Below are positions 385 to 52,773 of a stretch of 64,000 nt of DNA, piece after piece. The notes beneath the pieces are model-generated. The model was not told where the DNA came from. It searched no databases and saw only the letters and a program-made list of their open reading frames with translations. Made by a program: the position numbers and the translations under genes. The stretch comes from Mytilus edulis. Lineage: Eukaryota. Within the stretch, counting starts at the first letter, position 1; every line of letters begins with the position of its first letter. Location of the stretch: assembly GCF_963676685.1 (NCBI RefSeq), contig NC_092349.1:87420001-87484000 (forward strand), given 5' to 3'.

Positions 385-1626
385 GTATGAGCGGCGGAAT
401 GGGCGGAGGAATGGGAGGAGGAATGGCCGGTGGAATGGGCGGAACAATGGGAGGAATGGGAGGAGGAATGGGAGGAATGGGAATGGGAGGAGCAATGGGA
501 GGAATGGGAATGGGAGGAGCAATGGGAGGAATGGGAATGGGAGGCAAAAGTAAGTCATAGTTCATTCAAGATTTAATAAAGGAATAAATGCCTTTTTTTC
601 AGAGTATAAAGGACTTTTATGATATGTTTATGAGTGACGTGGTTCGGTTAAAAAAACAATAATATCCTTTGTAAAGTCTTATGATCCTTTATTTTGTCTG
701 TATATCTGTGTCACTGAATTGGCATGGCACCTTCATATATTTTTTTGGTTCAAATAAATGTTTTGTGTTTCTTGTTTAATTAAAAAATGAACGCGAAGTG
801 AAAATAAATATGTGAAACGTCGAAACAGTGTGTTTTATTATAGTATTTATCTTGTTTACGTTGTTAAGGAAAATTAGTTCCATCAACGGCGTCTACAAAT
901 TAATGACTTCCAGATCCTCTACAAAATACCCTTTCAATCAATCATATTGACGTATACTTTGATATGCATATCATATCAGAATAATGTTTTTAATAATGAA
1001 CTATTGAATTGCTTATATCAACATTATTTGAACTTTTTTGATGGTTACCTATTTGGCAATCATACAAAGTGTTTTTATAATTTTATATAGAATGTGTAAA
1101 TATTTATAATTCTTGTATCAACATAAAAGTCAATAAATTGATAAACATGTATTTTTTTAAATTGCAGGATATAGAAGATCTACTGGTATGTAGAACAGCA
1201 TTTATATTTATTTAGCAGACTATAATTATTTCTTAAAATGGCATTATTTTGTATCAGATGTATCAGATTCAAGTTTTATTATCCTCAGACACAAGCAGTA
1301 TATAAATGGTCAATATACATACATCAATACATAAATGAACAAATGATCTATACCTGTATACAGTACCTACAATATAATTATGAAAACACATTAGAGGTAT
1401 GACAATAGAAGCTAACACACTTTTAACAACCACGTGGTTATAGTAGTCAAAGATTGTTGAAAAATAAACAAGACAAGTATATTTTAGTCGTAGAGTTGAG
1501 TACTCCCGTAGTAAGCAAAAGTAAACATATACTAAAGTAGAAACAAAGTTGAAATTAATTTCCTTTTTGATGTTTACTCATGTGGACTTTTGTTTTCTTT
1601 CAGATTCTTATTCATATGATTACTGA
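385..1626 (+). CDS. Gly/Met-rich secreted protein A (abductin-like), 3' part only; exons 385-549, 1168-1185, 1604-1626
   Basis: All introns are GT-AG, phase 1. The spliced product reads GMSGGMGGGMGGGMAGG...GMGMGGK-RYRRST-DSYSYDY*. Exon layout matches gene B. AATAAA at 1679-1684. The signal-peptide exon must lie upstream of the window. Confidence 0.85.
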
Positions 1627-2020
1627 TCAACATCATAGACGTCGTATTAGTCCGAAACTAACCATTGTTGTACATTATAATAAATGTTTTTACATGTTTC
1701 TAAATTGTTTTCTTATGACGTTCACCCCTTATATGAATTACTTATTAGTCGATACAACATCTTTATTCATTGGTGGAAACATTGTCATTGGTTATTACTA
1801 ACTGTTCAGCAAATGCATCAAATTTTATCATGACACGGTTGGTGAATAAGGAACTAGTAAAAAATTTGTCGACAATATTCTTGGTTTCTTCATTGTAATA
1901 AGTATTTGATAATTGTTCATGAGGACATTGTCTATATAAATAAAGAATTTAAAAGAGAAAAAAAACCAACAGCATGATTTGATCTATAGCAATAAAGTTA
2001 AAGCAATCTTCACAAGCAGC

Positions 2021-2400
2021 AAAAGAGGGACGAAAATACCAAAGGGACAGTCAATCTCATAAATCTAAAACAAACTGACAACGCCATGGCTAAAAATGAA
2101 AAAGACAAACAAACAACAGCACACATGACACAACATACAAAACTAAAGAATAAACAACACGAACCCCACCAAAATCTAGGGGTGATCTCAGGTGCTACGG
2201 AAGGGTAAGCATATCCTGCTCCACATGTGGCACCCGTCGTGTTGCTTATATGATAACAAATCCGGTAAATAGTCTAATTCGGTAGGTAACATTCATGAAA
2301 GGGAAAGGGATTGTAGCTACAACGTAAGGAACATATCCGATAGCATTTGTGAAACGGTTATTCCATATCGGTCAACCAACTCGTGATGGCGTCCGTAATA
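2021..2400 (-). mobile_element. 3' fragment of a Penelope-like retroelement (family 1)
   Basis: AAAGAGGGACGAAA.ATACCAAAGGGACAGTC... is shared with ~12155-12410, ~36415-36482, ~39165-39380, ~52530-52773 and ~55943-56450. Confidence 0.7.
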
Positions 2401-2741
2401 TTTACTTACAATATCCACTGAATTACTTAATCTTAGTCTGGGACAGTCGTATAAAGAATATCGCTTTGTGTGGGCATGATTGTGACCACACAATTATCCC
2501 TTTCAACAGTGATACGGCAATCATACTTCAATTTAATTGAAATTTAATAATTCAAAATAGATGTTTGGGAAAATGCCATAGAAAAATGGCACAACAACAC
2601 AATAAAAACCAGGCGCTTTTTGGTAAATTCCTGGTCTCTTACTACTTGCCCATTACCATATTGTATAACTATCTCAGAATTGCGTTGATTCAATACAATC
2701 ACACCTTAAATGCAATTGCCAGTACATAATCAAAAGTAGCA

Positions 2742-2902
2742 GAAATACACATATTACGACAAAAACCTAACATGCGTTCATTATACATCACACGAAATAC
2801 ACATATTGCGCCACAAACCTAACATGCGTTCATTATACATCAAACGGAATACACATATTACGCCATAAACCTAACATGCATTCATTATACATCACACGAA
2901 AT
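2742..2902 (+). repeat. 52-bp tandem repeat x3
   Basis: Units start at 2742, 2794 and 2846. Confidence 0.85.
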
Positions 2903-4055
2903 GAAGAAACATACACCATATTTAGATCTAGATGAATTCATGTATCATATTTTACGACACATAAACCGTGACATAAATACTATGCTAGTCATGTTGTCGA
3001 TAACAACAATTTCTATAAATTTAGTGTAAATTCACATTGCGATAAGACGTGTCACGGTACTTGTCTATCCCAAATTCATGTATTTGGTTTTGATGTTATA
3101 TTTGTTTTTATCGTGGGATTTTGTCTGTTGCTTGGTCCGTTTCTGTGTGTGTTGCATTGTAGTGTTGTGTCGTTGTTCTCCCCTTATATTTAATGCGTTT
3201 CCCTCAGTTTTTGTTTGTTACCCCGATTTTGTTTTTTGTCCATGGATTTATGAGTTTGAACATCGGTATACTACTGTTGCCTTTATCTATATAATGCTCC
3301 ATATGTACAATGAGGAAAGTTTGTTTAGGAGCGTCTTTGTCAATATAAATCATTTTATCAAAACGTCTGAGAGAAAACAATAGCCATGGTATTAACATTG
3401 TTTAAAAAAATAACTGCAACGTTGATTAAAAATGGGCAAGTGCTTAAATGAAGGCAACAGTAGTTTACTGCTGTTCGAAATTCATAAATCGATTGAGAAA
3501 CAAATCCAGGTTACAAACTCAAACTGATGGAAACGCATCTAATATAAGAGAACTACGACACAACGGAAACGCGTCACGACACAGAAACGAACTTTAATAT
3601 AACAATGGCCATTTTCCTGAATTGGTACATGACATTTTAAGAAAAAAAATGGTGGGTTGAACCTGTCAATATCAAACTTTATCAATCAACACAACGAATG
3701 AACATGACTAAGGTGCAGATTGTTTTATCAAGTTAGCAAAATTTGATGCAGGAATGCGCATATTTAATATGAATTTCATTTAAAAGAACCAATTTTTAAG
3801 AATATAACTTATAAATATAAATATTTTTGCAACTATAGATTATTTTTGATTGTTTTCGATTTTTTTTTAATCGGCATTTTAAGGGGAGGTGCATTTTCTG
3901 AAGGAATCTACATTGCATTTTCCTATTTTGTATTTTAGCGGGAAAAAACATACCCTATCTTTTCTTTTGATATTCTGATTCTAATCGCAAAATGGTGTTT
4001 TTCTTGCATAATCCATACAAAATGTGTCATTTTATCACACAGTTTAATTGTTAAA

Positions 4056-4355
4056 CGATGATGACTGATGTACCCATATTTTGACTATTATATTTATTGT
4101 GTCTGTTTATTTAACGCATCAATGTAAAAATATCGGAAATTGATGAGACTGTCATTACAAAAGTGAGAGGGTTAGCGCTATAGAACCAGGTTTAATCCAC
4201 CATTTTCTACATTTGAAAATGCCTGTACCAAGTCAGGAATATGACAGTTCTTGTCCATTCGTTTTTGATGCGTTTTGTTATTTGACTTTGCCATGTGATT
4301 ATGGACTTTCCCAATTGATCTTCCTCTAAGTTCAGTATTTTTGTGATTTTACTTT
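4056..4355. mobile_element. Family 5 repeat
   Basis: GCCTGTACCAAGTCAGGAATATGACAGTT core. Copies at ~9180-9483, 48357-48620 and 53690-53915. Confidence 0.7.
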
Positions 4356-7300
4356 TCACAACCTGTAGCTTGAGAAAATGCGCGGTGACCTATCATTTTT
4401 ATTATATTTTTGAACATATATCAATAGATACTACGTTTTGGCAATCTATGAACAAATTTTATCATTTTTATTTTAGACTCCCATACCACCTTAAAACTTG
4501 ATTATTATCTCATTAACCATGTATGAAGGGTATGATTCAGTGAAATTGACAAAATTGAATGTGAAACTCAAACAGACATCGTGGATATAATAGTAAAAGT
4601 CACAAGTAAACATTCATCACAAATGACTAAAAATTTCAAACAAACATACAGATGTATATTTGTTGTTGAGATCATATCGACAAAGACGTCAATAACAATG
4701 GTTTTGTATTTGACAGTCCTTACCATATCATCCCACACCTTCCCTATGCAGTTCACACTCCGTACAATATTAAAACAATGATAAACAAAAACTTAAGCAC
4801 AAAGGTAACGAATGGAAACAACGTTAAAACAAAACCCTTTTGTATCCGAATCACTCATCAGTACTTACCTGCATCTATAATTGGTCGGGTTTTACCCATT
4901 GATGAAAGCTGTCAAAATAAAAACAACACGTTATAAAATACATTCGTCTACAGCAAATTTCGGGATTTATCGTCATTAGGAAAACGCAAAAACGAATATT
5001 TGACCGCCAAAGATTTACAAGAACTGTCATATTGACGAGTATCTTGAGTTTGTTTTAACTTTGTAATACTTGTGGAAGAAAATAACGTCTCCCTAGTTGA
5101 GATGCTTTATGGTCGTTAGATAAATAGATACGTAACAATAACGTTACGTTAATTATTACATACAAAAGTGTGCGCGGAAGTACGATAAACAATTACATAA
5201 CATAGCGTTCTAAAGTCGGTTGGCCTATATTCACGACTACTAGCTTTATACAAAAAAGACATACAAAATAAAAAAAAAAAAAACATCTATGGTCAAATTA
5301 GCCCGAGGGAATTGAAACCTAAGTTTTTTTTATAATTTTGACATTAAAAAACGGACAATTGTAGAAAGCTTTTTTCATAAATCATGTCATCGCCGAATAA
5401 CTGTCTATTAGTTTATGAGACATAAAGTCATTAGTAGTATATTGCAAATTAGTAGGCATAAATTGATTGGGAGAAAACAAATTCGGGTTACAAATTAAAA
5501 TAGAGAGAGACAAATCAATTTAACGACGCAAACACCATAACAATAGAAATACTGAAGTGGAACTAAAACAAACGCAATCGCATATAGAAGTGGGTAGTCC
5601 ACCTGGAGAGGTATCGACCCTTTCCTCAAGTAAAGTAAAAAGCATTTCATACTCCGAATGTGACATATAAATGTAGTTGCAAATGATGTCATTCGGACTT
5701 TAGTGGATAGCTGTTTCTGTGGCATTCATTCAACCATCCTTATTCTATATCATCAGCTATCAACAAAATACAAACAAAATACAAAAAATTTCAATTGCAT
5801 ACAGTTAACGTCAAAACGCATGTAGTTAAAAGAGACAAAACTATATATTGTAACGAAAACATAATCTTCACTTTTTGTCAATAAGGAAACACAATAGCAA
5901 TATCGAACATGATGTATGAATTCCGTGCATCCAATGATGTATAAATTCCTGACATTCAAAGGAGTATATAAAGGCAACAGTACTATGCCGTTGTTCGAAA
6001 GTCATAAATCGCCGCAGAGAAAACAAATCCTGGTTACAAACTAAAGGTCACATTTTAAAGAATATAATCTTGATGTAGATGTAACGATAATGATCCAGTA
6101 ACGTTGTATTAGACGTGTTATATACTAGACTCTGATCAGGTTGACAAAAGAATAGCCAACGTAGGTACAAGTATTGTGTCTTAGAGAGACGAATTCCTAC
6201 TATGTAAAAAATAACTCTGATTATAATAACATTTGTTTTGAAACTGACATTTCAATATGCTTGATTTCGGGATTGACAACATATTGGTTAAGTTTGGAGG
6301 ACGCATTTTTCAACAAACAATCGGCATTAAGTAAAAGAAGTTAGTAGTATCCTCAGACTTTACTTTTTGCTATATAGATTATGTTCTCTTAACAATTGAA
6401 AAGTTGGTGACTTTGTTGAACAAATCGATCTCATCGAACTTGAGAAAGAGGATACAAATAAGTCCGCCTCATATCTTACAACTAGAAATTGACAATGATG
6501 TCAGTTGAAAGCAAACCTTTAGAACCGAAAAGATAATTTCAGATTCCCAATTATGTTTTTTTTTTATGAATCATAATTCCAGGACATGCATACGGAGTAT
6601 GTATATCCCAGTTGGTGCGACATTCCTGGGAAAATGTATTCGACCCGTACATATGAATATAATCCCCATTCTATAATCACAAACAATTTAAAAGAAATTG
6701 ATCAACATGTTTAATGTTACACATAGACGTTCTAAGTTATATGGGAAATATTATATCTAGCTGAAAAGTTAGCTTAAAGGCTATTTAAAATTTCCTGATG
6801 TTTTGTCAGAGGGGGACACATATTCGCCGTTTTTAAACAACTATTTAAAACCCAATAACGTTGCTTTAAACAATATTTATCAAATCAATTTCATTTTAGA
6901 TGAATACCAGAAATTTAAAAGGTGAAGTGAAAAGAAGGGCAATCAGTCAAAGAAATACTAAGAAATACGTTTTTACACCACACAATCATACAACGGCGAA
7001 ATTGTGTCCCTGGCGAATATATGAACAGATAAATAGTATGCATAAGTTCATTTGCAAATAGTAATAGAGCTCGTTAAAAATCACAAATTTTATTTTATTT
7101 TCAAGTATATAAGTATATTTCACGAAATGTATCTATAAAGGGACGATCACATTTATTTTTTATTTTGTACAGACTACACACATTGTGCACAGTTAAAAAG
7201 CCCTAGGTCAACACTGTCAGATAAGTAAATTACACAAATTAAAGTGGGTAACTGATCCCGCTAAGATATTTGTCATCCGGCCCACCGCTAATATTATTTT

Positions 7301-7909
7301 AATTATATGATAAGACGGGGTTGCATTGTGTGTTAATATTTCAAAAGATCTAACCTTGATTATGTTGAAATGTCCTTCACTAATAATATTGAAAACGCAA
7401 GATAAAAAAAACACCAATGATATAAAGCTTGTTTTCAAGGTTGACAGGTTATTTGTTTTTATCTCCCCAAAATAATTTATATTGGCTTCGTTACACATAT
7501 TATGAGTTAATCGAATTTTAAATATTCACAACAGCATTGTCTATTATAATATTTAAAAAAAAAGTCTGTTATATGAACAAATATACACTAAAATTTAAAT
7601 TTTAATTGATGTATATTAGATCAAATCTTCAAATCACTTTTATGTTTTGATACGATTCTAACATTCAAAGTCAAATTTGTCAACCTCAGCGTCAAGTATA
7701 TACTATTTCGTAACACGTCTATTACAATCAAAGACCAACATAACATCAATCATACCGTGTAAAAAGAACTAGTTTGACATGTTAAAACATACAATAAAAT
7801 TAACAGGTACAAGTTATACATGATGACATAAAAATATTACTTATGTTTTAGCATGTTTATATTTTACAAGTTGTTAAAGTTGAATTCACTATTTCCTGTG
7901 CTAATTCCT

Positions 7910-7977
7910 TATAAAAGATGTTAAGTTTCTGAGTATGGTCACAATTTAACTTGTCCTCCCTACTGCTACAGGTATGT
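7910..7977 (+). promoter_or_regulatory. Putative TATA box and short non-coding exon 1 of gene B
   Basis: TATAAAA at 7910-7916 and donor CAG|GTATGT at 7971/7972. An acceptor TTTCAG ends at 9942, just before the ATG. Gene C has the same arrangement. Confidence 0.6.
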
Positions 7978-8356
7978 TGTTTGTACTTGCATTTAAGATC
8001 TAGATTTCAACAGTTAACTTTGGTGTATCATCCATTAGGTGACAATGTCCTTACTGTTTGGCTATAAATATTTGTCATTTTGGTCATATGACTGGTTGTT
8101 TACGGAATTTTAACATTCAATACATCCTAAGCTATCAAATATTTGGCCTTAAACGTTCATGATGAAAATAAACAAAAAACGAGTGCAATCATAAAAGTTA
8201 AAAGGGATAGACGTAAAAATCATTGTAACATATATTTTTTGTCTATCAATTCATTCGGTACATACCTTATGTGAATAAATAAATTGTGGAACCATATACG
8301 ATCAAAATGTAAATGATCAAATGATTGAACTCTTTTTGTTAACCAAATATATTAGA

Positions 8357-8757
8357 TTGTCGAAATGCGCATCAGGTGCAAGAAAATTGGTACCGTTTAT
8401 TTTTATTACTACCACTGGGTCGATGCCTCTGCTGGTGGACTATAAGTCCCCGAGGGTATCACCAGCCCAGTAGCCAGTACTTCGGTACTGGCATGAAAAT
8501 ACGGATTGTTTGTGTTATTAAAATTTGCTGTTACAAAATGATAGAAATTATTATAAATTAAGGAATGTATCTCCCTCGTGCAAAGCTCTGATTCCTTTCA
8601 CGGATTTGGCTATACTTTTTAGACTTTTTGGATTATAGCTCTTCATCTTTTATATAAGCTTTGGATTTCAAATATTTTGGCTACGAGCATCACTGAAGAG
8701 ACATGAATTGTCGAAATGCGCATCTGTTGCAAGAAAATTGGTACCGTTAATTTTATT
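8357..8757 (+). mobile_element. Non-LTR retrozyme-like unit (351-nt monomer) with terminal direct repeat
   Basis: TTGTCGAAATGCGCATC..TGCAAGAAAATTGGTACCGTT is repeated at 8357 and 8708. Predicted cleavage sites are after 8373 and after 8724. Confidence 0.7.
8685..8730 (+). ncRNA. Type I hammerhead ribozyme (minimal, Penelope/retrozyme type)
   Basis: Stem I GCATCA/TGTTGC (one mismatch), core CTGAAGA at 8693-8699, stem II GACA..TGTC, GAAA, short stem III AT-GCGC-AT and cleavage triplet ATC. Confidence 0.75.
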
Positions 8758-9951
8758 AACAATAAGCATGAATTAATACTTATTTGTCTCGTGAATGTGT
8801 GTTTATTTATATCGTGAATGTAAGTTGATTAAATTGCCCTTTAGACATTTGTTAAGCAGATATTAATTTTTGTTTAAACATTCTACAAGTTTTTTAAATG
8901 TATTATGTAAAATGTTGAGAAAAAAATGCAAAATAGTTATCAAAGGTACCAGAATTATAATTTAGTACGCCAGACGCGCGTTTCGTCTACGCGCGTTTCA
9001 TTAGTGACGCTCATATCAAAATTTTTACAGTTACTAAAATCTTATCTGAAACATATACCTGTTTTCAATTCCCTTGAAGCTAACATATTTACAGTGATAC
9101 TATATAATATACAATAACAAATAAAGTAAACAGACTTTTTTTTCGTATAAATGTTGCCTCAATTACTTAATAACTTTATGTTGACTGATGTACCTCTATT
9201 TATGATATTTTTATCTATTGTATCTGTTTGTTTTGTTAACGCATCATTGTCAAATTGTGGAATTAGATGTGACTGTCATACAAACGAGAGGTTAAGCTAG
9301 CTATAAAACGAGTTTTAATCCACATTTATTCTACATAAGAAAATACCTGTACCAAGTCAGAAATATGACACATTTTATCCATTCGTTTGATAAATTTGTA
9401 ATTGGGCTTTTGATTTTGCATTTTTGATTATGGTCATTTCTTTATATATTTCCTTGGAGTTTAGTATTTTTGTAATTTTACTTCAAACAACGTTACAGTT
9501 CACTTTTTCAGTCTTAAACTCCTCAAGATGAAATTAATTTCCTTATTAGAAATTCTTCTCATCATTAGTGCAATCTGAATATCATCCAATAAATTGAAAA
9601 AAAACCAAATTAATACGTGTCATCTGTAGTTATTTTTGGGTGAAATAATGGGTATTTAAAGTTTGTATCATACTGAGGTAAAGTTCATTTCTAAAATTGA
9701 TTTAGCAGTTAATAAACAGTGTTAATTTTACGCAAAAAACAAAAGTAACATCAAATGTACACTAACTTCAATAATTTTAGATTGTTTTGTCTTACTGAAA
9801 CAATAAAAAAGCTTGCTCAAAAACATAAAAGCCAAAACTAAAAGCACGTAACGGGTTAAAATAAATCATTTTCAATATCAGCAAACAATAAACAAAATAT
9901 AATTGAATTGCAAATAATGTTTTTTTAATTGTTTTATTTCAGTCTTTCATC

Positions 9952-12055
9952 ATGAATCCCATTCAGACCGTTGTCACATTTATTGTTGTCTTCGCCACAG
10001 TTAATGGTGCTGGTTATGGTAAAGGTGGCGGTATGGGAGGTGGTATGATGGGAGGCGGCATGGGAAGTGGTATGATGGGAGGAGAAATGGGTGGCGGTAT
10101 GGGCGGTATGATGGGTGGTGGTATGGGAGGTGGTATGATGAGTGGTGGCATGGGAGGCGGTATGGGTAAGATGATGGGCGGTGGTATGGGAGGAGGAATG
10201 GGCGGTGGTATGATGGGCGGTATGATGGGTGGTATGGGAGGTGGTATGGGTATGGGTAAGATGATGATGCCGATGCCAATGGAAATGCCAATGCCAATGC
10301 CAATGCCAATGCCGATGCCAATGCCAATGCCAATGCCAATGCCAATGGAAATGGCTATGCCTATGCCAATGCCAAAGATGGGAGGTGCAATGATGGCTGC
10401 TATGATGGGAGGTAATTAAAACGCATTTTATGTCTGACTTTCATGGATTATTATTACCTCTAATACAAAGATGTTATTTAATATAAGTGAACACATAATT
10501 AGCAATTATTACAAATGTGTCAAGGACTTGCTGGATTCTCCATTTCAATTTGTTCAAGCTAACTACATTTACGTTCTATTCTGTATAATTAATATATACT
10601 TATTTCCAGTTGATACAATATTCGAGAGCTTGTATTTCTTATCATGCTTTCCTTGATATAAATGTTTTCAAAAGAGAAAACTAAATGCCTGATTTAGGAC
10701 AAGACAATTAACAAAAATAAATGTACATGGCATATAGCAACCAAAAACAGGAATTGAGTAAAAGGCACCTGACATTGGAAAAACACATAAAAAATGGACT
10801 TGGGTTTAATTGTTTTGCAAAAATACATGTGTATATTCAAAATAATATTCAAAGTACAATGCATATCTCAAAATAGTCAAACATATTAAAATAGTTTTAA
10901 AAAACCCATATATATTGAATAAATAATACATGTTCTTATGCTAAGATTTAGTGTATTATTTCAATATATGTTTTGTATTCTTATAGGTATGGGCGGAGGA
11001 ATGGGTGGAGCTATGGGAGGTGGTATGGGAGGAATGGGCGGTGGTATGGGCGGAGGCATAGGAGGTGGCAAAAGTAAGTCATAGTCCATTGAAGATTCAA
11101 TTTGTTATAATGTACTATACGGTTATCGAATGTTCTATTTGTATCTGAACAATTGAATAGAAATGTCATATTAAGATTTCGTGACACTTGCTTTTTCTTT
11201 TGTGAATTATTTAAAGAATGATACTTCATTATTTGTTCTCATTTCATATGATTGTTTTTAATACTTTTCATATTAAGTTAAACATGTAGTACACATTAAA
11301 ATAAAGGCAACAGTAGTATACCGCTGTTCGAAAATGGACTGAGAGAAAACAAATCCAGATTACAAACTAAAAACCGAGGAAAACAATTGAAACAACGAAA
11401 CAAATCACTAAATCTCATGTGGTTACTTACACACACATTCATATTTCTAAGTATATTGGTATATTGATATATATTATTTTGCAGGATATAAAAGAGCCAC
11501 AGGTATTTATAACTCACATTTAATATAGTTATTATCTCTATTTGGAAACACCTATCGGAATTACGAGTCCTCAATGCTTTTCAACTTCGTACTTTATTTG
11601 ATTATCCGGGTGCGGGAATTTCTCGCTACATTGAAGACCTGTTGGTGACCCTCTGCTATTGTTTTTTATTTGGTCGGGTTGTTGTCTCTTTGACACATTC
11701 CCCATTTCCATTCTCAATTTTATTACTGCATGACAGTCATTGCTACAAATGTACCTGTCATCTCAATAAGTATCATGTATTGATTGATTGATGAAAGCCT
11801 AACAAAAGGTCATGTCACAACAAGAGCTAAATAAGAACACAAAATTTAGTTAATTTGTTATATTGCAGTCAATAGATAAAATCAATGTGAAGTTTTATTT
11901 CCTTCAAATTAGAAAAAAAGAAAGAAGAAAATAACAATAAATGATACACACTGCAATAGTTAATGTCAACATTTATATTTATATTTCCATTTCCATCTGA
12001 CGTTTACTTAATTTGGCTTTCTTTTCTTTCAGATTCTTATTCATACGACTATTGA
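9952..12055 (+). CDS. Gly/Met-rich secreted protein B (abductin-like, with Met-Pro block), 195 aa; coding exons 9952-10411, 10987-11073, 11485-11502, 12033-12055
   Basis: Hydrophobic signal MNPIQTVVTFIVVFATVNG, then AGYGKG, (GGM/GGGMM)n, (MP)n and C-terminus GGGK-RYKRAT-DSYSYDY*. Canonical phase-1 splice sites; 588 nt in frame; AATAAA at 12108-12113. Confidence 0.9.
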
Positions 12056-12154
12056 AAACCGTTATATGAGCAGTATTTGTCATAAACATTCCATCTTTGT
12101 CCTGTATAATAAATGTTTAAATCTGACTTGATTTGTTTTCTTATGATGATAGTT

Positions 12155-12410
12155 AAAAGAGAGACGAAAGATACCAAAGGGACAGTCAAACTCATAAATC
12201 TAAAACAAACTGACAACGCCATGGCTAAAAATGAAAACGACAAACAAATAACAGCACACATGACACAACATAGAAAACTAAAGAATAAACAACACGAAAC
12301 TCATATATCTAAAACAAACTGACAACGCCATGGCTAAAACTGAAAACGACAAACAAATAACAACACACTTGACACAACATAGAAAACTAAAGAATAAACA
12401 ACAAGGAAAC
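12155..12410 (-). mobile_element. Family 1 retroelement 3' fragment with internal tandem duplication (~110 bp)
   Basis: AAACTCATA.ATCTAAAACAAACTGACAACGCCATGG occurs twice. Confidence 0.7.
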
Positions 12411-14416
12411 TCATACTTAGATGTTTTATGTGTGTAAACATGGTCATGTACCGTCATCCATTACTTGACTGGACATGTATCGTGCATTAGCATGCCAATG
12501 TCTGTTCTTGATTTAGGAGTAATTCCAATTTTTGTCTTCAAGATTCTAGTTTTTTTCTAACCACTGTCCCAGGTTAGGGGAGGGTTGGGATCCCACTAAC
12601 ATGTTTAACCCCGCCACATAATGTATGTATATGTCTGTCATTTAGTGGTCATCGTTTGCTTATGTGTTACATATTTGTTTTTCGTTCATTTTTTATACAT
12701 AAATAAGGCAGTTAGTTTTCGCGTTTGAATTGTTTTACATTGTCATTTCGGGGCCTTTTATAGCTGACTATGCGGTATGGGCTTTGCTCATTGTTGAAGG
12801 CCGTACGATGACCTATAGTTGTTAATTTCTGTGTCATTTTGGTCTCTTGTGGAGAGTTGTGTCATTGACAATCATACCACATCTTCTTTTATGTATATAT
12901 AATAATAAGTTATTATCGTAATAAATAAACAATTTAAACAGAAAACCAACATCCTAATCTGAAATACAACAATATCCATAAATTGAGTAAGTCAGACGTC
13001 AACTAATGATCATAGAACTGGATCATAGTTTGGCAAAGGAGAATAAATCATATGATTTTGAATTTTCAACTCTCCTTTACAAGAATGAAACGGCTGTAAT
13101 GTTTTTGAACAACTTCATGTCTACAAATAAAAAAGATGTTTGGGTAAACGCCAGTAACAAAATGACATACAAACAACACAAAAAAAAAACCTGGTAAGGT
13201 TTTTTTGGTAAATCTACCGTAAAAAAAAAGGTGAGAACATTTCAAACTGAAAATACATTCATATTCCTCAAGTTAAAATGGTCAGGTGAAACACAAGAAT
13301 ATTGAATACACACAGACATTGCTCCTTTATAACAACAGATCCATTTCTGTCTAGCAACTTTCCAGCAGCTCTTATATAGAGAGGATATATTTCATATTCC
13401 TATCCGTGTGGGTTGCTGATCTCAAGGAAACTATTCACCTTAGATTTGAAAAGGTAAAATCTTCCCACCGAACATTTTACCGCCGCAATCAAGAGTTGGA
13501 TGACGACGGATTTTATCCAAACATCACAACCCCAAGACTGTCCTTCTTTTCGTCGAATGCGATTAACTGAATAAGTCTTATCAACGGGTTTGTACTTTCA
13601 CACACGAGCAGTACAAGAGGTGCCACAACTGGAGTAGGAGCTGGTATCCTTCCGGATCCCGTTCTACATTTTTTTTCATGTTGTGTTTTTTTTAATTGTT
13701 ATTCTTGATTCTTTTCGACTTATAAGTTTAAAAGAGGGCTGTCCCTTTGTTATCGTTGGTTATGACAACTTTATATCAAACTGAAATTAATTCCCTGATT
13801 CCTTAAAAGAATGTGTAACACATCTATTTACAGACATCAATTACAAAGTACTCCACAGCATGATAAACTAGAATACAGCGGCATTTTAGAGGACCGTAAC
13901 ATGCCTAATACTAAAGAAATTAAACAAAAAATAGAAAAGGCTAAGAGACGAGTGACTATTTAAATTTGTAATAACTACAATACTACCAGTAGTTTTACAA
14001 ATAAGACAACACCGTAAAAACTTCCTTTACCAACTAAACCGTCCTAAAACACTACGTATAGTACGTATCTTCTACGAATGTTAATTGCCTAATTTTCATA
14101 ATACAAAATGCCTAGATACTTAGATACCTAAGCAACAGACTGAAGAACAAGTCCCTTTATAACTGACTATGCGGTATGGGCTTTGCTCTTTGTTGAAGAC
14201 CGTACGGTGACCTATAGTTGTTAATGTCTGTGTCATTTGGTGTCTTGTGGAGAGTTGTCTCTTTGGCAATTATACCACATCTTCTTAATAAATAAAACCG
14301 TCCAGTCATAAAGGAACCACAAAGGACCAATCAAGTAAAACATACTGATGATGTTTTCACCACAAAACAATATATACATATAGATTGAAATACAAATTGA
14401 TTGTAAAAATATATTA

Positions 14417-14657
14417 CTGTGGATTTATTATTTTTGGTTTGAAACCAACTTTTGTGGATTTAGTGGATGCAGATGAACCTCGAAATTAAATATTAAACGA
14501 ATTTACTAAAGGCAAATATGCTGACTCCGGCAAAATCACGAAAACAAAAGATCCACGAACATTGGTGCCCACGAAAACAAAAGATCCACGAACATTGGTG
14601 CCCACGAAAATAAAGATCCACGAACATTGGTGCCCACGAAAATAAATGAATCCACAA
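14417..14657. mobile_element. TA-flanked MITE with an internal 33-bp tandem repeat (14537-14643)
   Basis: CTGTGGATTTATTATTTT / AAAATAAATGAATCCACAA termini and about 3 copies of CACGAAAACAAAAGATCCACGAACATTGGTGCC. Confidence 0.6.
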
Positions 14658-16962
14658 TAAATAATACAATGTATAAACAGCATACATGTTACTAAACTTA
14701 ACTGAAAAAAAGGAAAAGGGGTGACAAACTACTGACAGAGTTTCGGATGATTATGATGATAATGAAAACGAGATCCGTTTTGCCTGTATTGATATTATAC
14801 TTCGATGAATATTTGTATGTCTAATAAAACTTATATACTTGTTTGAAAACTTGCATATTTTTTTAATCATAAAGAGTTTTCGTTCAAATAACAAATAGTC
14901 CAAATTACAGCCTTCTGGGTGTTCATATATCGTGCACAGTTGTTTCAATTTTTTATTTCTGTTTAGTGAAAAGTAAAATATCAAAAATACCGAGCTACGA
15001 TGAAAATTCTAAACTGAAAGTCTCCCGTATCGTGCCAACAACTAGTGTTAGAAAAAATGTGTTTTTTTCTTTTCAAAAACCCTATTAGTGAATCAATATT
15101 AGTAACAAAATCTGCCATCCTAAATGATCTCACTGCAGTACCCTAACTGTATTGCTGCGTAATAGGTAATTTGTAAAGGTTATGCTAGCTTTTGAGGTAA
15201 ATGTCGACATGTTTGTGCTTTGAAATGAAAAATATTCTCTTCTATCATAAATTGGTGTATTAAGCTTCCTGTTCAAGATATAAAAATAAAGATCCAAGAA
15301 TATGCAGTGTTCACTGTAAGTATAAGATTAATTAATGTCAGGTTATTTTTTGATATATGTTCCCTGTATTAAAAGTAATCTTTTGAATGCATTCCATTTC
15401 TGAATAACGTATTTTAACCGTTACGCGATTAAAAAAGAGACTACGAAAAGCTTGATATTTCTATTCAAAATCAAAATAAATGAACTGAATTTAAGTATCT
15501 GATTTATTTTACGGACTTAGACAATAAAAAAACCCGTATCATTTAGTAAGCTATTAAAGGATACAGCAAACAATATACACAGATGACTCACTTTGGTTGA
15601 AAAACCTTAGAGGTTGCACTTTGTCAATACAACTGTTTCTCAAACCACTACTTTCTTGTGGCGATATATAATATTCACAGACATGTTAATTTGTTAACGT
15701 ACTGGTTCCAATAAATGATCTCTGTGTGTCATCTCAAAGAGACATCAATTGGAAATGTAATCAGTACAAAAACATGGTAGTGCATACATTTAAATTCTCA
15801 TGAGGTCAAAAAATGAAGGCAAGGGTAGTATAGAACTTTAGTATAAGTTTAAACTCGTAGAAGTTCAGGGCATGTACATGTTTAAAATATGCCACACAGC
15901 TCTATACTTTGACCTTTGAATAAAATAGTAATGCATATAAACTTTCCGTTCTGGGATATTAATTTTCACAAAACTTTATAATAAAAGTTTCACAGTTTTA
16001 GCCGAAAGGGAGTGGGAAATTGCATTGTGTATATCAACAGAATTGCAACCTACAAAGCGAATAACTACTTATAAAACATTAGGTTTATCCCTGAGTTACA
16101 ACTTTAGTGTAGAGGCTTTAATGCATAACTTTGTGTCGTATATCATATGCATAGAGTTGTGCGGTACACATGTTGTGATTTATAACCATTCCATATATAT
16201 ATTATATACGATAATAAAAAAACATAGCAGCTAATTTTAAATTCAACAGATGACACGAAAAAGGTGAACTTCTCATAGATACAGAATTGCTACTTTTGTA
16301 TTCCGTGGATAATATAATAGAAATATAGTTTTATAACTAATTGTAAGATATCATATTAAAACCTCTTGTGGAATTATTGCAAAATAAAGTTGAATCACAA
16401 TTTCTGCAATGTTTACCCATTGGTAAAAAGTTATCAAAGGTACCAGGATCATAATTCAATACGTCAAACGCGCGTCTCGTCTACATATGATTCAAAGTCA
16501 AAGAGCATTTAGGATCCAAAATTCCGAAACGTTGTGCCAAATACGGCTAAGGTAATCAATCATTTCAGCTGTTTGATAAGTCTTAAATAACGTTAAAAAA
16601 TAATGATAATTTCACCTATGTCAACGCCCTTTACCTCGTTCCTTGTTTATATGTTTTATTGAGTCTATATCTCTATCTTGTGTAGCGCTTAAGGATAACT
16701 CAAAGCACAATAGGGAGAAAATTAATTATTTAAATATTTCCGCGAAAATTGTCCTCAAATATTTAATACTTTTTAAGAAAGTAGCAAAACAACAACTGTT
16801 TTAGTTAGTGTCTATGTTTGTTAGCAATAGCCACATGAGTCAGTATACCTTGAAGTTTCTAAAACAATAGAATAACTCAATCTATACAATGCTACTACAA
16901 AATGTACAACATGTTGGTTTAAAAAAAAACATAATATGACTCAATCTATTCTATGGCTTTTC

Positions 16963-17480
16963 AAATTGAGAAAGGAAATGGGGAATGTGTCAAAGCGGCA
17001 ACAACCCGACCATAGAGCAGACAAAAGCCAAAGGTCAACAATTGGTCTTCAATGTAGCGAGAATTCCCGCACCTTCAGCTGGCCCCTAAAAATATGTATA
17101 CTAGTACAGTGATAATTGACGTCATACTAAACTCCGAATTATACACAAGAAACTAAAATTAAAAAGCATACAAGACTAACAAAGGCCAGAGGCTCCTGAC
17201 TTGAGACAGGCGCAAAATTGCAGCGGGGTTAAACATGTTTATAAGATCTCAACCCTCCCCTATACCTCTAGCCAATGTAGACAATTAAACGCATAACCAT
17301 ACGCACATAAAAATTCAGTTCAAGAGAAGTCCGAGTCCGATGTCAAAAGATGTAACAAAAGAAAATTAATAAAATGACAATAATACATAAATTACAACAG
17401 ACTACTAGCAGTTAACTGACATGCCAGCTCCAGACCTTAATTAAACTGAGAAGATTATGTCTTCATCATACATGTATGAA
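16963..17480. mobile_element. Dispersed repeat (family 4, AAATTGAGAA.GGAAATGGGGAATGTG end)
   Basis: Inverted copies lie at ~21477-21855 and ~11605-11722. Confidence 0.7.
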
Positions 17481-18678
17481 TAGAATATTTTGTTTGTTTT
17501 GTGTTTGTTTATAAAATGAATTCATTTACTATCTAATGACAATTTGTTGAACCAGAGGGACTAACAAATAAACTCATCATAGATACCGAGATTGGAATTG
17601 TTTATTTGCGCCATCCGCGCGTTTCGCCTACAAAATTACAGACTGATACAGTCTCCTGGTCCAAGATTATATATTCCGTAATGCATTTTGTTTTGATTTG
17701 AAGAAATTTTTTCTAAATGCTTATTGTATTAAGATAGTATAGAAATAGCAGTCTGTAATGTGTTCATCAAAAGACACATTTTGTTTGATTGTGTAAATGA
17801 TGACTTGTTTCACTTAGAAATATATAATAGCAATATAATAATCTTCAATCCATAACGATACAATATTGATATTATTTACATAATGGAGATGTGCAAGTGT
17901 ATATCTACTACAATTTGTTTTAATTGTCTGCTTGTTTGGTTAACATCTTTACTTCAAATCACCAGGATACTTAAAAAAGCAGCCCAGGACAGCTGACAGA
18001 GGGTTCCCTGCTTTTACTTTACATATACCAATTGCAACGGAAGAATACAAATGAATAAAAAATTACACACTTTCATATATATTCAATACATAAACCAGCA
18101 TCTGTTTTCAGTTAGTTAATGTATTCTACACACCTTGAAATCTTGCACCTTTATATTAAATTTTTAGTTTTAAATACAATAACAATAAAATAGTCTGTCT
18201 CTGAGTTATGATTGTGATTACATATACAACACAGCATAGGTTGCTAAGAGAGCTGACAAAATACAAATGGCAAAATATATAATTAGCCTTTGAAATGCCC
18301 TTCCACCCAAACCACACTCGTTTTTAAAACGAACTAAAATGACTGTTGTGGAAAACAAGAATTACATTCGAATGAGTATTATCTTTACTATGAAATACCT
18401 GGTGGAATGAACGGGTACAATTTATATAAAAACCTCTCAACAGAATATAAAAAACCCAAAAATAGTTAAAAGAAACAATGACAGACAAACGAACAATTCT
18501 TCGTATAGTTATTACATGTATAAACAAAAACGACTTTTAAATTTCTGACACATTTAATGGGATAAAACACCGTTTCCTTGTTTCGATTGGTCATTCCCAT
18601 TTACAAGGAACATCTTGTTATCTTCCTGTAGAAAACGACAGGATAACGATTATTGTGATTATTACAAAAATATCTTAC

Positions 18679-18762
18679 ACAATCTTAACGACTACTTCAT
18701 GTAATACTACAGTTATAAAGACAACCTTAACGACTAGTTCATGTAATACTACAGTTATAAAG
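18679..18762 (+). repeat. 42-bp tandem duplication upstream of the gene C TATA box
   Basis: ACAA(T/C)CTTAACGACTA(C/G)TTCATGTAATACTACAGTTATAAAG x2. Confidence 0.85.
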
Positions 18763-18924
18763 TCACATATAAGTTTAACCTTCAATCTTTAAGTTATAAA
18801 GTTGAATGAAAGTTTTACATATAACATGTAAGACATGACATAGAAAGTAATCAAAGACATTTTAACATTGTTAATCGTGTAACTTTTCTTTATTTTAAAT
18901 GTCTGTGTTTCCGAGTTATTTTAC

Positions 18925-19008
18925 TATATAAATGCCAAACTGACCATCGATCTTTACTCCACTATTTGCCGTCATTTCCCATCGGATCCACATCTAACAT
19001 AGGTATGT
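18925..19008 (+). promoter_or_regulatory. Putative TATA box and non-coding exon 1 of gene C
   Basis: TATATAAA at 18925-18932, donor TAG|GTATGT at 19002/19003, acceptor TTTCAG ending 19879 with the ATG at 19881. Confidence 0.6.
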
Positions 19009-19880
19009 AAAATAGATTCATAAAAAAATTGCAGAATAAAATGAGTATTAAATCTTTTTACTGTAGATTAGTGATCGATTTGTAGTTTTTCTATGTTCAC
19101 GAAATCAAAATCTCTTTTTTTTTAAACTAATACTAGTATAACTTGATAGTTTTTATAATCAGATTAAACAGATCCGGAGTATATTATTGTTTTAATGATA
19201 CATGATGGCTATTAATTTTCATTTCATTTAATTCTCCAATTTACCCAAAGGTTACACCTTCGTTATGCTTCGTTAAGCTAAAATGACATCATCCAATTTA
19301 AGCCGATTTAGTTTTGCTACTCATGATTTTTGTTTTTAGCAGAATTTTGGTCTTTATAACGTATGTGATCAGAGTTTTTTTTTCAAAAACATGCATATGT
19401 TGGCCACCAAATTCGGTATCATACCTCAGAAAGATTATATGTTGTGTAAAAACATCGATAAATCTAAAGGTCAACATTGCCTTCCACATATTTTTTTTTA
19501 ACTTTTTGTTTTTTATATAGAAGAACATACAAATATACAAAATTACGTTTACACGTGTAAAAAATCTCATGTACGCGTAAGTAAACCCCTTGTACTAATA
19601 AGAACAAATTTTTAAACTAATTGTGAACGTGTTTACAGAACATAACGTTTGGAAGGAAAATGGCCTAAGTATAGTGTCAGTTATATTTGAATAAACAAAG
19701 ACCTTTTCACTATTATTGATCGGTGTCCAAATAAAACAAAATATATAATATGTATGTAAGTTTCACTAACTGAATTTGGTCTGCGGGTATTTTCAACCTG
19801 AATAACAAGGAAAGAAATACAATGGTAAATATTAATGTTTAATGAATATAGCTTAATATATGCAGTCATTTCTTTTCAGA

Positions 19881-22292
19881 ATGAATCCTCTACAAACCGT
19901 TATTGCAGTCTTTGCCGTATGCTTTGTGGCAGTAAATGCCGCCGGATATGGTAGAGGAATGGGCGGAGGAATGGGCGGAGGAATGGGCGGCGGCATGGGT
20001 GGTATGATGGGAGGAGGAATGATGGGTGGTATGCCTGGGGGTATGATGGGAGGAATGCATCCTATGATGGGTGGCATGCCCGGTGGCATGATGGGTGGTA
20101 TGCCCGGTGGTATGATGGGTGGCATGCCAGGTGGGATGATGGGTGGCATGATGGGTGGAATGGGCAGCGGTATGATGGGTGGTAAGTTTTTTTAGTCTAA
20201 TTAAGTCAACTAGATTTAAAAAACTATACAAAAACAAAAACAAAAGGTTAACCTTGAAATCTGAAGATGGAAAATATCAAGAAAATAAATTTGTTGGTAC
20301 AAGCTTAAGTTTGTGAGAGGTATCAGTTGCCAAATAAGTGTGCACTCGTTGTTGAAACCGGACTGCATCTAGTAAATACAACTATTTTCGATGAAAAAAT
20401 GTTGATGCATGTATGACTACATTACTTTCTCTCTTAATTCAATTATGGTGTTTTTCAACATATGAGCATATTGTATATAGAAATCATTTTAAAAGGTATT
20501 TTAATTGTCTTAGGCAACAATTCAAAGCAAATAAAGTAACAAACATTATACAACGAGTTCTGTTGAAATTTGTTAATTTTAAAATTGTTTGGTCTCCAGT
20601 GGCACTGTTGAGCCTGGTGGTTTGTTAAAACATCTTAACCAGTTGTAAATATAATAATGCTTCATATATGGAACACCGTATCAACCCTTCACCAAAATCG
20701 GGCTCTATCAGAGTTTTAGCATCATACTGGTGTTCTGGGATGACACATATGTGATATTTAAAAAGTCGTATAATATTCTCTATTTATCAACATTGCAGGT
20801 ATGGGAGGTATGATGGGAGGAAAAAGACGTAAGTAAAAATTAGACTAATTTTATCATTTAAATAATTTCTTCATATAATATATCTGCATATTCTGCTTTA
20901 AAGAGGACATGAATAGATTTGCATGTCCGTCACACATGTGCTTCTTGATAACAATTATTAAAGTTAAGTTACATAAATGTTTTTGTTTTAATTATACCTC
21001 CGAAACCTTAATATCAAGTAATGGACTTGAAAGTAAAAGTCATTTTTTACTTTGATGGTTTTGACATATATTGTTTAGGAATAATCATCTTGTTTTTTTT
21101 GTTCGATCTTTAACATTCAAAGTAATAATTAGAGTATCACATCACATATTTTTTTCTTTGCAAGTTTGGACATAATAGATAAAGGCAAAAGTAGTATACT
21201 GCTGTTCAAAAGTCATAAATCGATTGAGAAAAAATAAATGATGTCTTAGATCATAGAATACAAATTTTTGATTACGATGATTTTGAAGTAAATTGTTCAA
21301 TAGTAAATTTTACGATTGAATGGTGCCGTATAGTTTTTATTTGATACTCATAGTATGCCACTTATAGTCACAAGTTCATTTGATCTCTTTTCTAATATTA
21401 CAGGTTATAGAAGAAATGCAGGTAAATTGTATTATAGTTTAAGCTAGTGTAGTAAAATAAACATGAAGGACATACTTCTCTTGAACTGAATTTTGATGTG
21501 CGTATTGTTATGCGTTTACTTTTCTGCACTGGCTAGAGGTATAGGGGGAGGGTTGAGATCTCACAAAAATGTTTAACCCCGCCGCATTTTTGCGCCTGCC
21601 TAAGTCAGGAGCCTCTGGCCTTTGTTAGTCTTGTATTATTTTAACTTTTAGTTTTGTGTGTACAATTTGGAGTTTAGTATAGCGTTCATTATCACTGAAC
21701 TAGTATATATTTGTTTAGGGGCCAGCTGAAGGACGCTTCTGGGTGCGGGAATTTCTCGTTGCATTGAAGACCTGTTGGTGACCTTCTTCTGTTGTCTGCT
21801 CTATGGTCGGGTTGTTGTCTCTTTGGCACATTCCCCATTTCCATTCTCAATTTTATACATATTTTTCCAATAAATACTGGCAAACTTTTATGTAAACCAA
21901 TCTTCTGGATTTCTCGCTCCACCGTGATAAGTTATATTCTCTCCTGAATATCAAGTAGTACACATGCAACAAATTAAATGTGGAGCCTTCATTTTAAAGC
22001 ATGTATTGTTACATAACAAGTCATGGCTAAGACACATCAAATTGTGTAGTGTGTGTTGTGGATTTTATATAAATACTGTCAGTTGTTTCTATGCATTATA
22101 CGGTTATATCATCAAATTACTTATTATACAAAATAGCATGAACTATATTCTATAAATTGTCTGCCACTTCAAATCAACTTTAAATTTATTAATCATGTGA
22201 CAATACCCTTGACTATCAAAAGAATTACAATTTTGTATGTACATTTGGTATACTCTTTAATTGCAGATTACAGCCAAGGATACGACTACTAG
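19881..22292 (+). CDS. Gly/Met-rich secreted protein C (abductin-like), 124 aa; coding exons 19881-20181, 20799-20828, 21404-21421, 22267-22292
   Basis: Signal MNPLQTVIAVFAVCFVAVNA, then AGYGRG, (GGMMGGMP)n repeats and C-terminus GGKR-RYRRNA-DYSQGYDY*. Phase-1 GT-AG introns; 375 nt in frame; AATAAA at 22316-22321. Confidence 0.9.
21477..21855. mobile_element. Family 4 repeat in an intron of gene C
   Basis: Reverse complement of ~16963-17325. Absent in the paralogous intron at ~51090. Confidence 0.75.
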
Positions 22293-23473
22293 TGCCTGGA
22301 TATGTCATCAATTTCAATAAACATTCAGAGAAAACTTACAGATCTTCTTTTTTTATAATTTGTTTTACAACACATGATGAAGCTCGAATTCTATGACTTT
22401 ACTCATTGACTCCCTGAATATATACAGTTTACAAGAGGTATAGACAAAAAAGTATTATGTTAAACTTCCAAAAGATTCCTATCCTTTGTCAACCGTTTCG
22501 AATGTCCCCACACTTAGAATTAGACTATAAGGTATAAATTGAAATAAAATAACAAAAAAATCAAACAATCGATATTATTTTTATTCAATCTTCCTGTCAA
22601 AACTTAAAAACTGTGTCAGTGATTGTATTTAGGTGTTCAGGGTGATGTTTTCTTTTCCTTTTTGGAAATTTATTGTCGATAATCTGCAGATATTTGATAA
22701 ATTTATTCTAAAATTTCTTAACCATTTCTGTGCGATGCGATTGAGCTTATCGTATCAACTTCTATACTTTAGACAGTAGTACGCTGCTGTTAAAAAGACG
22801 TAATCGATTAAAAAAAAAAATCAAATCCAGGTTACAAACTAAAACCGGTCGATGAAATGTTACTGTAACTATCGCAATCGAAAAACAATATTGAGATGTT
22901 TCTATCGCAGAGACAGGATATAACAACTACTTTTTGTAAAATAGGATATATTACGAAGGGAACAACCACCCCACAAATCAAAGAAATACAACAGAACTTT
23001 GATCAAAAGAAAAAGAAGACACACATCAACTCACAAGAAACTAAACTAAAATTCAACACAGGCCCTACAAACACAGAGTGAGTTCAGATGCCCCGGAAGA
23101 GCCAATTCACTAGTATATAAAATATTTACATTCGAAAAAAAGCAAATTATATTAAATGAAGTCATTGTATTTGTTAAACAGGAAACTAAATAGACAAGTG
23201 TTAATGTAATTATATAAATGGGAACAAATATATTCTAATGGATTATGGAACTTCGTTTTAGTCTACATTGATGACGAATATAACAATGCGGATAATGAAG
23301 AGAATTTTGATAATATGTATGCTGACATTGATGTAGATTTTAGGACGAGGTAGTATATATTAAACATCATTGCAGGAAATAAGGTCTACAAATAAAAGAT
23401 CAAAAAGATCACTGTTTGACTATCGAATCTTCAAATTCTATTAAAATAATAAAAAAAAAAAACATCTTTGCCT

Positions 23474-51937: not shown

Positions 51938-52529
51938 TTCCTGGATATGTCATCAATTTCAATAAACATTCAGAAAACTAACAGGTCTTCTTTTAATTCT
52001 TTGATAAAATATAATGCAGTTCCAAGTTTACATATTGTAATGATGCCTTAGTGTGAGAAGCAGACAGGAGGAAGTGACAAATACTATGTTGAACTAACAA
52101 AAGTCCCTTCCTGCCTGTCACTCGTTTAGACTGTTTTCGCATTAATTTTACAATATTTTTTGAAAGAAAAATAAACCCAAATAATTAAAAACCAAGCATT
52201 ACTATTTGAATAATATCGTATAGTCATGTCAAAGCTTGGAAACTGTGTCAGTGATTGCAATAAGTTCCATATTAGTGTTTTTTTTGTATTCTAGAAATTT
52301 AGTATCGCTAAACTCATCATAAAGCAGGCCACGATAACATGTCTGAACCATTTCCTTGGATGCGATTCAGAGACCAGTAATTCAACTTTAAAAAAAGTCA
52401 ATGTATGTATACTGAGGAAAACCTTTACTGAATGCATGATGACATAGAAAGAAAAATACCTGTATAACCTATGCATAATTGCAAAGAAGCATTACAAAAA
52501 TACCAAATTCCGATGAAAATTCAAACCGG

Positions 52530-52773
52530 ATTTGAAATCACATAAGCAACACGACGGGTGACACATGTGGAGCAGGATCTGCTTACCCTTCCGGAGCACC
52601 TGAGATCGCCCCTAGTTTTTGGTGGGGTTCGTGTTGTTTATTCTTTAGTTTTCTATGTTGTGTCATGTGTACTATTGTTTTTCTGTTTGTCTTTTTCATT
52701 TTTAGCCATGGCGTTGTCAGTTTGTTTTAGATTTATGAGTTTGACGGTCCCTTTGGTATCTTTCGTCCCTCTT
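52530..52773 (+). mobile_element. Family 1 retroelement 3' fragment
   Basis: Reverse complement of 2021-2260. Confidence 0.75.

Follow-up and report, generated by a model that had tools for sequence, protein, structure and literature searches.

A tandem cluster of genes for secreted Gly/Met-rich proteins in Mytilus edulis, candidate matrix proteins of the mussel hinge ligament

The locus at positions 385-22292 of this stretch of Mytilus edulis DNA (NC_092349.1, 87,420,001-87,484,000) raises the question of whether its Gly- and Met-rich reading frames belong to real genes and, if they do, what material the products might build. The stretch analysed, referred to here as the window, comprises 64 kb of a 1.37-Gb assembly and is AT-rich (~31 % G+C); its flanks were also scanned, over 60 kb upstream and 20 kb downstream. 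A six-frame scan of the window located Gly/Met-rich stretches on the plus strand only, at 366-557, 10003-10299, 10968-11072 and 19938-20192. With the flanks included, the cluster consists of four intact genes on the same strand, which we call Z, A, B and C, and one broken copy, D. The four intact genes constitute a real gene family, apparently without annotation, for secreted Gly/Met proteins, and their design suggests that they may encode elastomeric matrix proteins of the hinge ligament.

The gene models are listed below, with negative coordinates denoting positions upstream of the window start.

-15852 to -13771 (L007:4148-6229), plus strand: gene Z, intact, 263 amino acids.
-1942 to -1060 and -538 to -92 (L008:8058-8940 and 9462-9908), plus strand: gene A coding exons 1 and 2.
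385 to 549, plus strand: gene A coding exon 3, with GGMGMGGAM Gly/Met repeats ending ..GGK, an AG acceptor, a GT donor, phase 1 on both sides and tandem-repeat (TRF) periods of 12/27/39.
1168 to 1185, plus strand: gene A 18-nt micro-exon, (K)RYRRST, with a furin-type R-X-R-R and AG/GT ends; a conserved island between paralogs.
1604 to 1626, plus strand: gene A last coding exon, DSYSYDY and stop; AATAAA at 1679-1684.
9943 to 10411, plus strand: gene B coding exon 1, ATG at 9952, with signal peptide, AGYGKG, GGGM/GGMM repeats, an (MP)n block and KMGGAMMAAMMG.
10987 to 11073, plus strand: gene B coding exon 2, GGGM repeats ending GGGK.
11485 to 11502, plus strand: gene B micro-exon, (K)RYKRAT, with a furin-type R-X-K-R.
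12033 to 12055, plus strand: gene B last coding exon, DSYSYDY and stop; AATAAA at 12108-12113.
18913 to 19002, plus strand: gene C non-coding 5' exon, donor GT at 19003, with TATATAAA at 18925-18932; its 5' end is uncertain, as contigs extend back to 18721.
19880 to 20181, plus strand: gene C coding exon 1, ATG at 19881, with signal peptide, AGYGRG and GGGM, then MPGGMMGG repeats.
20799 to 20828, plus strand: gene C 30-nt exon, (G)MGGMMGGKR.
21404 to 21421, plus strand: gene C micro-exon, (R)YRRNA, with a furin-type R-Y-R-R.
22267 to 22292, plus strand: gene C last coding exon, DYSQGYDY and stop, the stop ending at 22292; AATAAA at 22316-22321.
50301 to 51937 (50301-50330, 51022-51039 and 51912-51937), plus strand: fragment D, with C-like exons 2-4 only, reading ..MGGMMGGKR RHRRNA DYSQGYDY and stop.

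The introns of Z, A, B and C all have canonical GT-AG ends and are in phase 1 without exception, and an AATAAA follows each stop codon at a distance of 23-52 nt. The interval 385-22292, which runs from the first gene A exon inside the window to the gene C stop, was originally predicted to hold three same-strand genes with a common exon architecture, and every feature described there is present. The gene set itself needs revision: the 3' half of A and the complete B and C stand as predicted, but the cluster is larger, with Z and the 5' half of A upstream and fragment D downstream, and A has five coding exons (511 amino acids in total) rather than four.

Several lines of evidence show that these are real, constrained genes. 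The micro-exon pattern gave 4 matches against 0.01 expected, and a search of the whole genome with two tail-exon patterns found only five places in 1.37 Gb, namely Z, A, B, C and D. When the first exons of B and C were used as further queries, the family was again confined to these loci. Similarity between the paralogs is limited to the exons (67-85 % DNA identity), the introns having diverged beyond detection, and the tail exons of Z, A and B differ at three positions, all of them synonymous. The periods of the tandem repeats in the coding regions range from 12 to 117 nt and are all multiples of 3, and the GGGM peptide unit is spelled by as many as 13 different DNA sequences in a single gene, which indicates that the repeats are maintained as protein sequence and do not represent a DNA microsatellite. 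In addition, C-like first-exon open reading frames from another organism (P0001-P0004 and P0049-P0056, from ENA/JGI contigs and unnamed in their source) end at the gene C exon 1 donor and contain 2-8 MPGGMMGG units, a range that suggests repeat-number polymorphism or species differences.

One weak match elsewhere in the same genome, on the minus strand of contig C13 (L011:4838-5254, equal to G000:C13:31358838-31359254), was rejected as a GGGL-repeat protein. In this small, secreted protein the (GGGL)n repeat gives way to a region rich in Arg and Pro, and the C-terminus is hydrophobic; the protein is unrelated to the Gly/Met family.

Evidence of transcription comes from gene C. In a contig of run X4 (organism C, record 18), positions 18913-18999 are joined directly to 19877-20184, which demonstrates splicing of the 5' intron between the non-coding 5' exon and coding exon 1; within a 3-nt ambiguity, the junction fits the GT at 19003 and the AG at 19878-19879. 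A check for spliced transcripts had been proposed together with the original prediction, and this splice from the 5' untranslated region to exon 1 supplies one. Contigs of run X2 (organism B) break off at 18999 (record 10) and at 20180, and beyond each of these points 30 letters follow that do not belong to the intron, as expected of a de Bruijn graph at a branch between spliced and unspliced forms. For the three 3' introns, the contig ends do no more than agree with splicing. Most of the mapped reads at gene C derive from two copies of a repeat element, at 16963-17590 upstream of the gene and at 21175-21857 in its intron 3, and are uninformative about the gene. These dispersed copies lie in opposite orientation and are 85 % alike, and a related piece occupies 11605-11723 in intron 3 of gene B. 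The very high depth on this repeat in every RNA-like run indicates that the element is transcribed somewhere in the genome.

The products share one plan. Composition was counted exon by exon with split codons added, and single exons served as queries for searches and folding. On this basis, the Z product (263 residues) contains 46.8 % Gly, 30.0 % Met and 7.2 % Pro; A (511 residues) contains 39.9 %, 28.8 % and 6.5 %; B (195 residues) contains 37.9 %, 29.7 % and 8.2 %; and C (124 residues) contains 38.7 %, 25.8 % and 4.8 %, respectively. Each begins with a hydrophobic leader of ~19-20 residues, MNPIQTVVTFI(A/V)VF(V/A)TVNG or MNPLQTVIAVFAVCFVAVNA, ending in VNG or VNA with small residues at -3/-1, and these leaders identify the products of Z, A, B and C as predicted secretory proteins with an N-terminal signal peptide. 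The N-terminus of B reads MNPIQTVVTFIVVFATVNG and then AGYGKG, and that of C reads MNPLQTVIAVFAVCFVAVNA and then AGYGRG; the motif AGYG[KR]G follows the leader generally and is replaced by FPYGGG in gene A.

The main domain is built of GGGM/GGMM/GGMP repeats. In Z, A and B it contains (MP)n blocks bordered by Lys (GKMMMPMP..MPKMGG), gene A has four 39-residue units of the form MEVEMKP[AT]PAAGN[KR]M(GGGM)n with a period of 117 nt, and the repeat unit of gene C is MPGGMMGG. Apart from the leader and the initial FPYGG of A, the proteins contain no Phe, and Cys is absent from Z, A and B and occurs once in C. One Tyr lies at residue 22/23 and the rest are confined to the last ~14 residues, as had been predicted from the sequence; the C-terminal tails hold 3-4 of the 4-5 Tyr in each protein. 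An AF2 model of gene B exon 1 showed a helix only at residues 3-19, in the leader, and coil elsewhere (pTM 0.19), and the Gly/Met products are accordingly modelled as intrinsically disordered.

The C-terminal module is encoded by the 18-nt micro-exon and a last exon of 23-26 nt. Its basic site and tail in each copy are as follows.

Gene Z: K-RYRR, then ATDSYSYDY.
Gene A: K-RYRR, then STDSYSYDY.
Gene B: K-RYKR, then ATDSYSYDY.
Gene C: KR-RYRR, then NADYSQGYDY.
Fragment D: KR-RHRR, then NADYSQGYDY.

The motif R-X-[KR]-R, the consensus of furin-type convertases, stands directly before the tail in 5/5 copies, and the residues that follow it vary (AT, ST or NA). This is the pattern expected of a processing site, and on the strength of the motif the micro-exon site is probably cut by a furin-type convertase. 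The micro-exon is also an island of identity amid introns that otherwise cannot be aligned between the paralogs. The tail peptides are acidic, contain Tyr, are 9-10 residues long and end in YDY; each precursor carries a single copy, and an amidation signal is absent. For B and C, the original prediction of a signal peptide, AGYG[KR]G, GGM repeats and a terminal GGK(R)RY was correct as to the elements present, but GGK(R)RY is not the encoded end. The furin-type site and the YDY peptide had been missed, and since the R-Y-[KR]-R site precedes that peptide, GGK(R)RY could be the end of the chain only after processing.

Among mussel materials, only the ligament protein of bivalves is known to combine a high content of Gly with one of Met (Kahler et al. 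1976; Kikuchi and Tamiya 1981). The reading that we favour, with a probability of about 0.5, is that these tandem duplicates encode secreted, disordered Gly/Met structural proteins that belong to the elastomeric matrix of the mussel hinge ligament, in analogy to abductin in scallops. Abductin, the hinge-ligament elastomer of Argopecten irradians (Cao, Wang and Bayley 1997), is made as a 136-residue precursor with a 19-residue leader. It has GGFGGMGGGX repeats, two Cys and two Tyr in its N-terminal region, Tyr at its ends, Gly near 58-60 %, Pro about 1 %, 14 Met and 3 Lys, and its chain-end Tyr are the proposed cross-link sites (PMC9999432, PMC13052691).

In the ligament model, the signal peptide of ~19-20 residues directs the chain into the secretory pathway, and the GGGM/GGMM/GGMP repeats would form a flexible chain, prone to polyproline-II, that stores energy entropically. 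Both GGM repeats and peptides of abductin sample polyproline-II conformations (PMC12571646), which fits such a flexible-chain mechanism. In Z, A and B the repeats are interrupted by (MP)n blocks and by Lys at the block borders (GKMM). A network could form through the single N-terminal Tyr, the C-terminal Tyr residues and possibly Lys or Met. A furin-type convertase would cut at R-X-[KR]-R, after which removal of the basic residues would make ..GGKRY the end of the chain. The freed acidic Tyr peptide of 9-10 residues, [AS]TDSYSYDY or NADYSQGYDY, could then bind the aragonite of the ligament as the ligament intracrystalline peptide (LICP) of Pinctada fucata does. LICP has the sequence pQPDHEGTYDY, in which the binding of aragonite involves Tyr8, Tyr10 and the acidic residues (PMC13080008).

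The protein searches returned little by which to place the family. The leader region alone (residues 1-40) gave nothing at E <= 10, an exact look-up of the exon-1 open reading frames found no entry in the collection searched, Pfam had no family for the products, and neither the protein libraries nor the literature searched yielded a mussel hinge-ligament protein sequence. The phmmer matches P0005-P0048 were bacterial or otherwise compositional and were rejected on inspection, and the sole metagenome-contig locus returned, L012, encodes an unrelated (MPGQ)n protein. Because micro-exons of 18-30 nt are combined with low-complexity coding sequence, standard annotation is likely to miss these genes. 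This had been anticipated in the original prediction and fits the absence of an annotated protein in the libraries searched.

A number of observations weigh against the ligament reading. With phmmer, a search of 1.84 billion representatives returned compositional matches and one unnamed C-like open reading frame, with no abductin and no named relative, although low complexity and bias filters make this a weak negative on abductin homology; word-indexed searches of protein libraries gave no named relative and no annotated protein for the cluster genes, and in the ESM Atlas scores reached at most 0.77 with no relative. The repeats of the cluster, GGGM, GGMM, MPGGMMGG and GGMGMGGAM, lack Phe and are not the GGFGGMGGGX of abductin; Met, at 26-30 % versus about 12 %, is two to three times higher; and Pro, at 4.8-8.2 % versus about 1 %, is raised, with (MP)n blocks in Z, A and B. 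In Pinctada, Met-rich regions are found in the insoluble proteins of every shell layer and not in those of the ligament alone (PMC7591529). On the side of the peptide, the match between the tails and LICP beyond YDY is weak for a 9-10-mer, the residue after the site is A, S or N, so that no N-terminal Gln is available for pyroglutamate, and the cleavage itself is read from the motif. At the level of RNA, runs X2 and X1 also contain unspliced pieces, the depths of the contig runs on gene C are low (about 5-33), and a raw RNA-seq run, X21, of which ~6 % was read, had zero depth on the gene; as X21 carries no tissue label, its zero depth is no evidence against expression.

The main rival, which we regard as unlikely, places the proteins in the framework of some other material secreted by the mantle (nacre, prismatic layer, myostracum or periostracum), after the manner of shematrins and KRMPs, and not in the ligament. 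Shematrins and KRMPs, from the prismatic layer of Pinctada, combine a signal peptide and Gly-rich repeats with the C-terminal signature RnKmY (PMC3896809), and the cluster chains, once processed and trimmed, would end comparably in ..GGKRY; the Met-rich regions of insoluble proteins from Pinctada nacre and prisms (PMC7591529) point the same way. However, the repeats of shematrins and KRMPs are of the Tyr-rich GnY type and their motif is truly terminal, whereas the cluster repeats are free of Tyr, the proteins contain 26-30 % Met, and 9-10 residues lie beyond the motif. Moreover, no sequence match to named shell proteins was obtained in the libraries searched. Less probable still is that the products are structural proteins whose C-terminal module stays uncleaved, so that the chain ends ..RYRRATDSYSYDY and the basic motif with its acidic Tyr tail (4 Tyr in ~14 residues) acts as a cross-linking or anchoring end. 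The concentration of Tyr in the tails, the cross-linking proposed for the chain-end Tyr of abductin (PMC9999432, PMC13052691) and the lack of the N-terminal Gln of LICP would all suit such an end, but the retention of R-X-[KR]-R in every copy, including the divergent C/D type, next to variable residues argues for cleavage.

If the site is cut, the small C-terminal peptide, hormone-like or antimicrobial, might be the sole functional product and the Gly/Met region a mere spacer. Each precursor does have the signal peptide, the furin-type motif and the conserved peptide at its end that such a scheme would call for. We nevertheless consider it very improbable, given that the Gly/Met domains span 100-480 residues, make up >90 % of each product and are conserved at the protein level between paralogs despite synonymous change, and that the peptide is present once per precursor with no amidation signal. 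The least credible explanation is that the locus is non-functional, consisting of chance open frames in simple repeats of the GGN-ATG type or of decaying pseudogenes. The low complexity of the sequence, the dead copy D and the lack of reads in one RNA-seq run could be cited in its favour, but in all four intact copies the leader, splice sites, phases, micro-exons and poly(A) signals are preserved, the tail-exon differences are only synonymous and a spliced contig exists; the data already contradict it.

Fragment D is a dead, 5'-truncated duplicate of gene C. Its homology to C begins within C intron 1, where 20594 aligns to 50183, and no exon 1 or leader for it was found within 28 kb upstream. 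The copy is part of a segmental duplication in which 20594-24019 recurs at 50183-53449, covering the 3' half of gene C and, on the minus strand, the final exon of a gene resembling 3-beta-HSD (Pfam PF01073). That exon lies at 23474-24019 and at 53072-53449, and the second copy is shorter (125 versus 181 residues of open frame). More broadly, the Gly/Met cluster sits among at least five 3-beta-HSD/NAD-epimerase-like paralog exons arrayed on both strands, at L003-L006 (window -49335 to -26035), 23474-24019, 53072-53449 and 59861-60136; these exons show the motif LKTLAILPLP.YGELDY.., and that at 59861-60136 is an N-terminal GGSGFLG exon. Between gene C and fragment D, a retrotransposon-like element at 30779-35382 on the plus strand has open frames of 598, 272 and 633 residues with gag-like, integrase-like and reverse-transcriptase-like sequence. 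Intergenic tandem repeats were found downstream of A at 2742-2902 (52 nt x 3.1) and downstream of B at 12188-12415 (109 nt x 2.1). Rfam 15 gave no match across the window at the gathering score, and none in 8200-8900 even at E <= 1.

Hinge-ligament proteins of bivalves are known for very few species, with abductin from scallops and LMP, TIMP and LICP from the pearl oyster, and the cluster provides concrete, testable candidates for the mussel. Like abductin, the cluster products appear to be small secreted bivalve proteins with a leader of about 19 residues, a Tyr just past the leader, a repetitive and disordered Gly/Met domain, few Lys, and Tyr only at the chain ends. The abductin-like architecture is thus a real feature of the predicted proteins, and the original prediction of a same-strand multigene family of secreted, low-complexity Gly/Met proteins with the general design of scallop abductin (PMC9999432, PMC13052691) holds. 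The likeness to abductin does not extend to the GGFGGMGGGX decapeptide, the low Pro or the two conserved Cys of its Ala-rich N-terminal region, and no homology was detected by phmmer, a weak negative in low-complexity sequence; the cluster proteins resemble abductin in design and are at most putative members of its family. Further differences are the lower Gly content (38-47 % versus near 58-60 %), the added furin-type site and acidic YDY tail, and the range of sizes, from 124 to 511 residues.

The other ligament proteins resemble individual parts of the cluster products. As in LICP, the tail is a short acidic peptide ending in YDY, and in the cluster proteins it forms the very end of the chain, behind a basic processing site. 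The tail of C and D, NADYSQGYDY, also has 10 residues and shares D3, Y8, D9 and Y10 with LICP, whereas the tails of Z, A and B ([AS]TDSYSYDY) have 9 residues and have only YDY in common with it when the C-termini are aligned. The ligament methionine-rich protein (LMP) is the major insoluble protein of the Pinctada ligament and is rich in Met, Pro, Lys and Asp (PMC7591529 supplement). LMP of Pinctada fucata is, like the cluster products, secreted, extremely Met-rich and of low complexity, and its MMPMMPP and MMMKPD segments resemble the KMMMPMPMPMP..MPK blocks of Z, A and B only. In contrast, LMP consists of MMMKPD hexapeptides with hardly any Gly, and its C-terminus, ..PTPYNLYQG, has neither a basic site nor a YDY tail. 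Shematrins and KRMPs have in common with the cluster a signal peptide, Gly-rich repeats and a signature of basic residues with Tyr (RKKKY or RRKY, compared with K-R-Y-[KR]-R), but their GnY repeats lack Met where the cluster repeats lack Tyr, and the motif that forms their true C-terminus is internal in the cluster proteins, 9-10 residues before the end.

Taken together, these partial likenesses allow a bolder proposal, which we put forward tentatively and consider doubtful as it stands: that a single ligament gene family yields two materials per precursor, an abductin-like elastomer with LMP-like Met-Pro blocks and a convertase-released, LICP-like aragonite-binding peptide, and that abductin, LMP and LICP might represent modules of one ancestral pteriomorph ligament gene that mussels have kept together. 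The cluster also suggests a way in which an elastic matrix might be supplied jointly with a peptide that shapes crystals. Its four natural variants of a putative Gly/Met elastomer, which differ in repeat grammar and in their optional Met-Pro blocks, may also be useful for the design of biomaterials.

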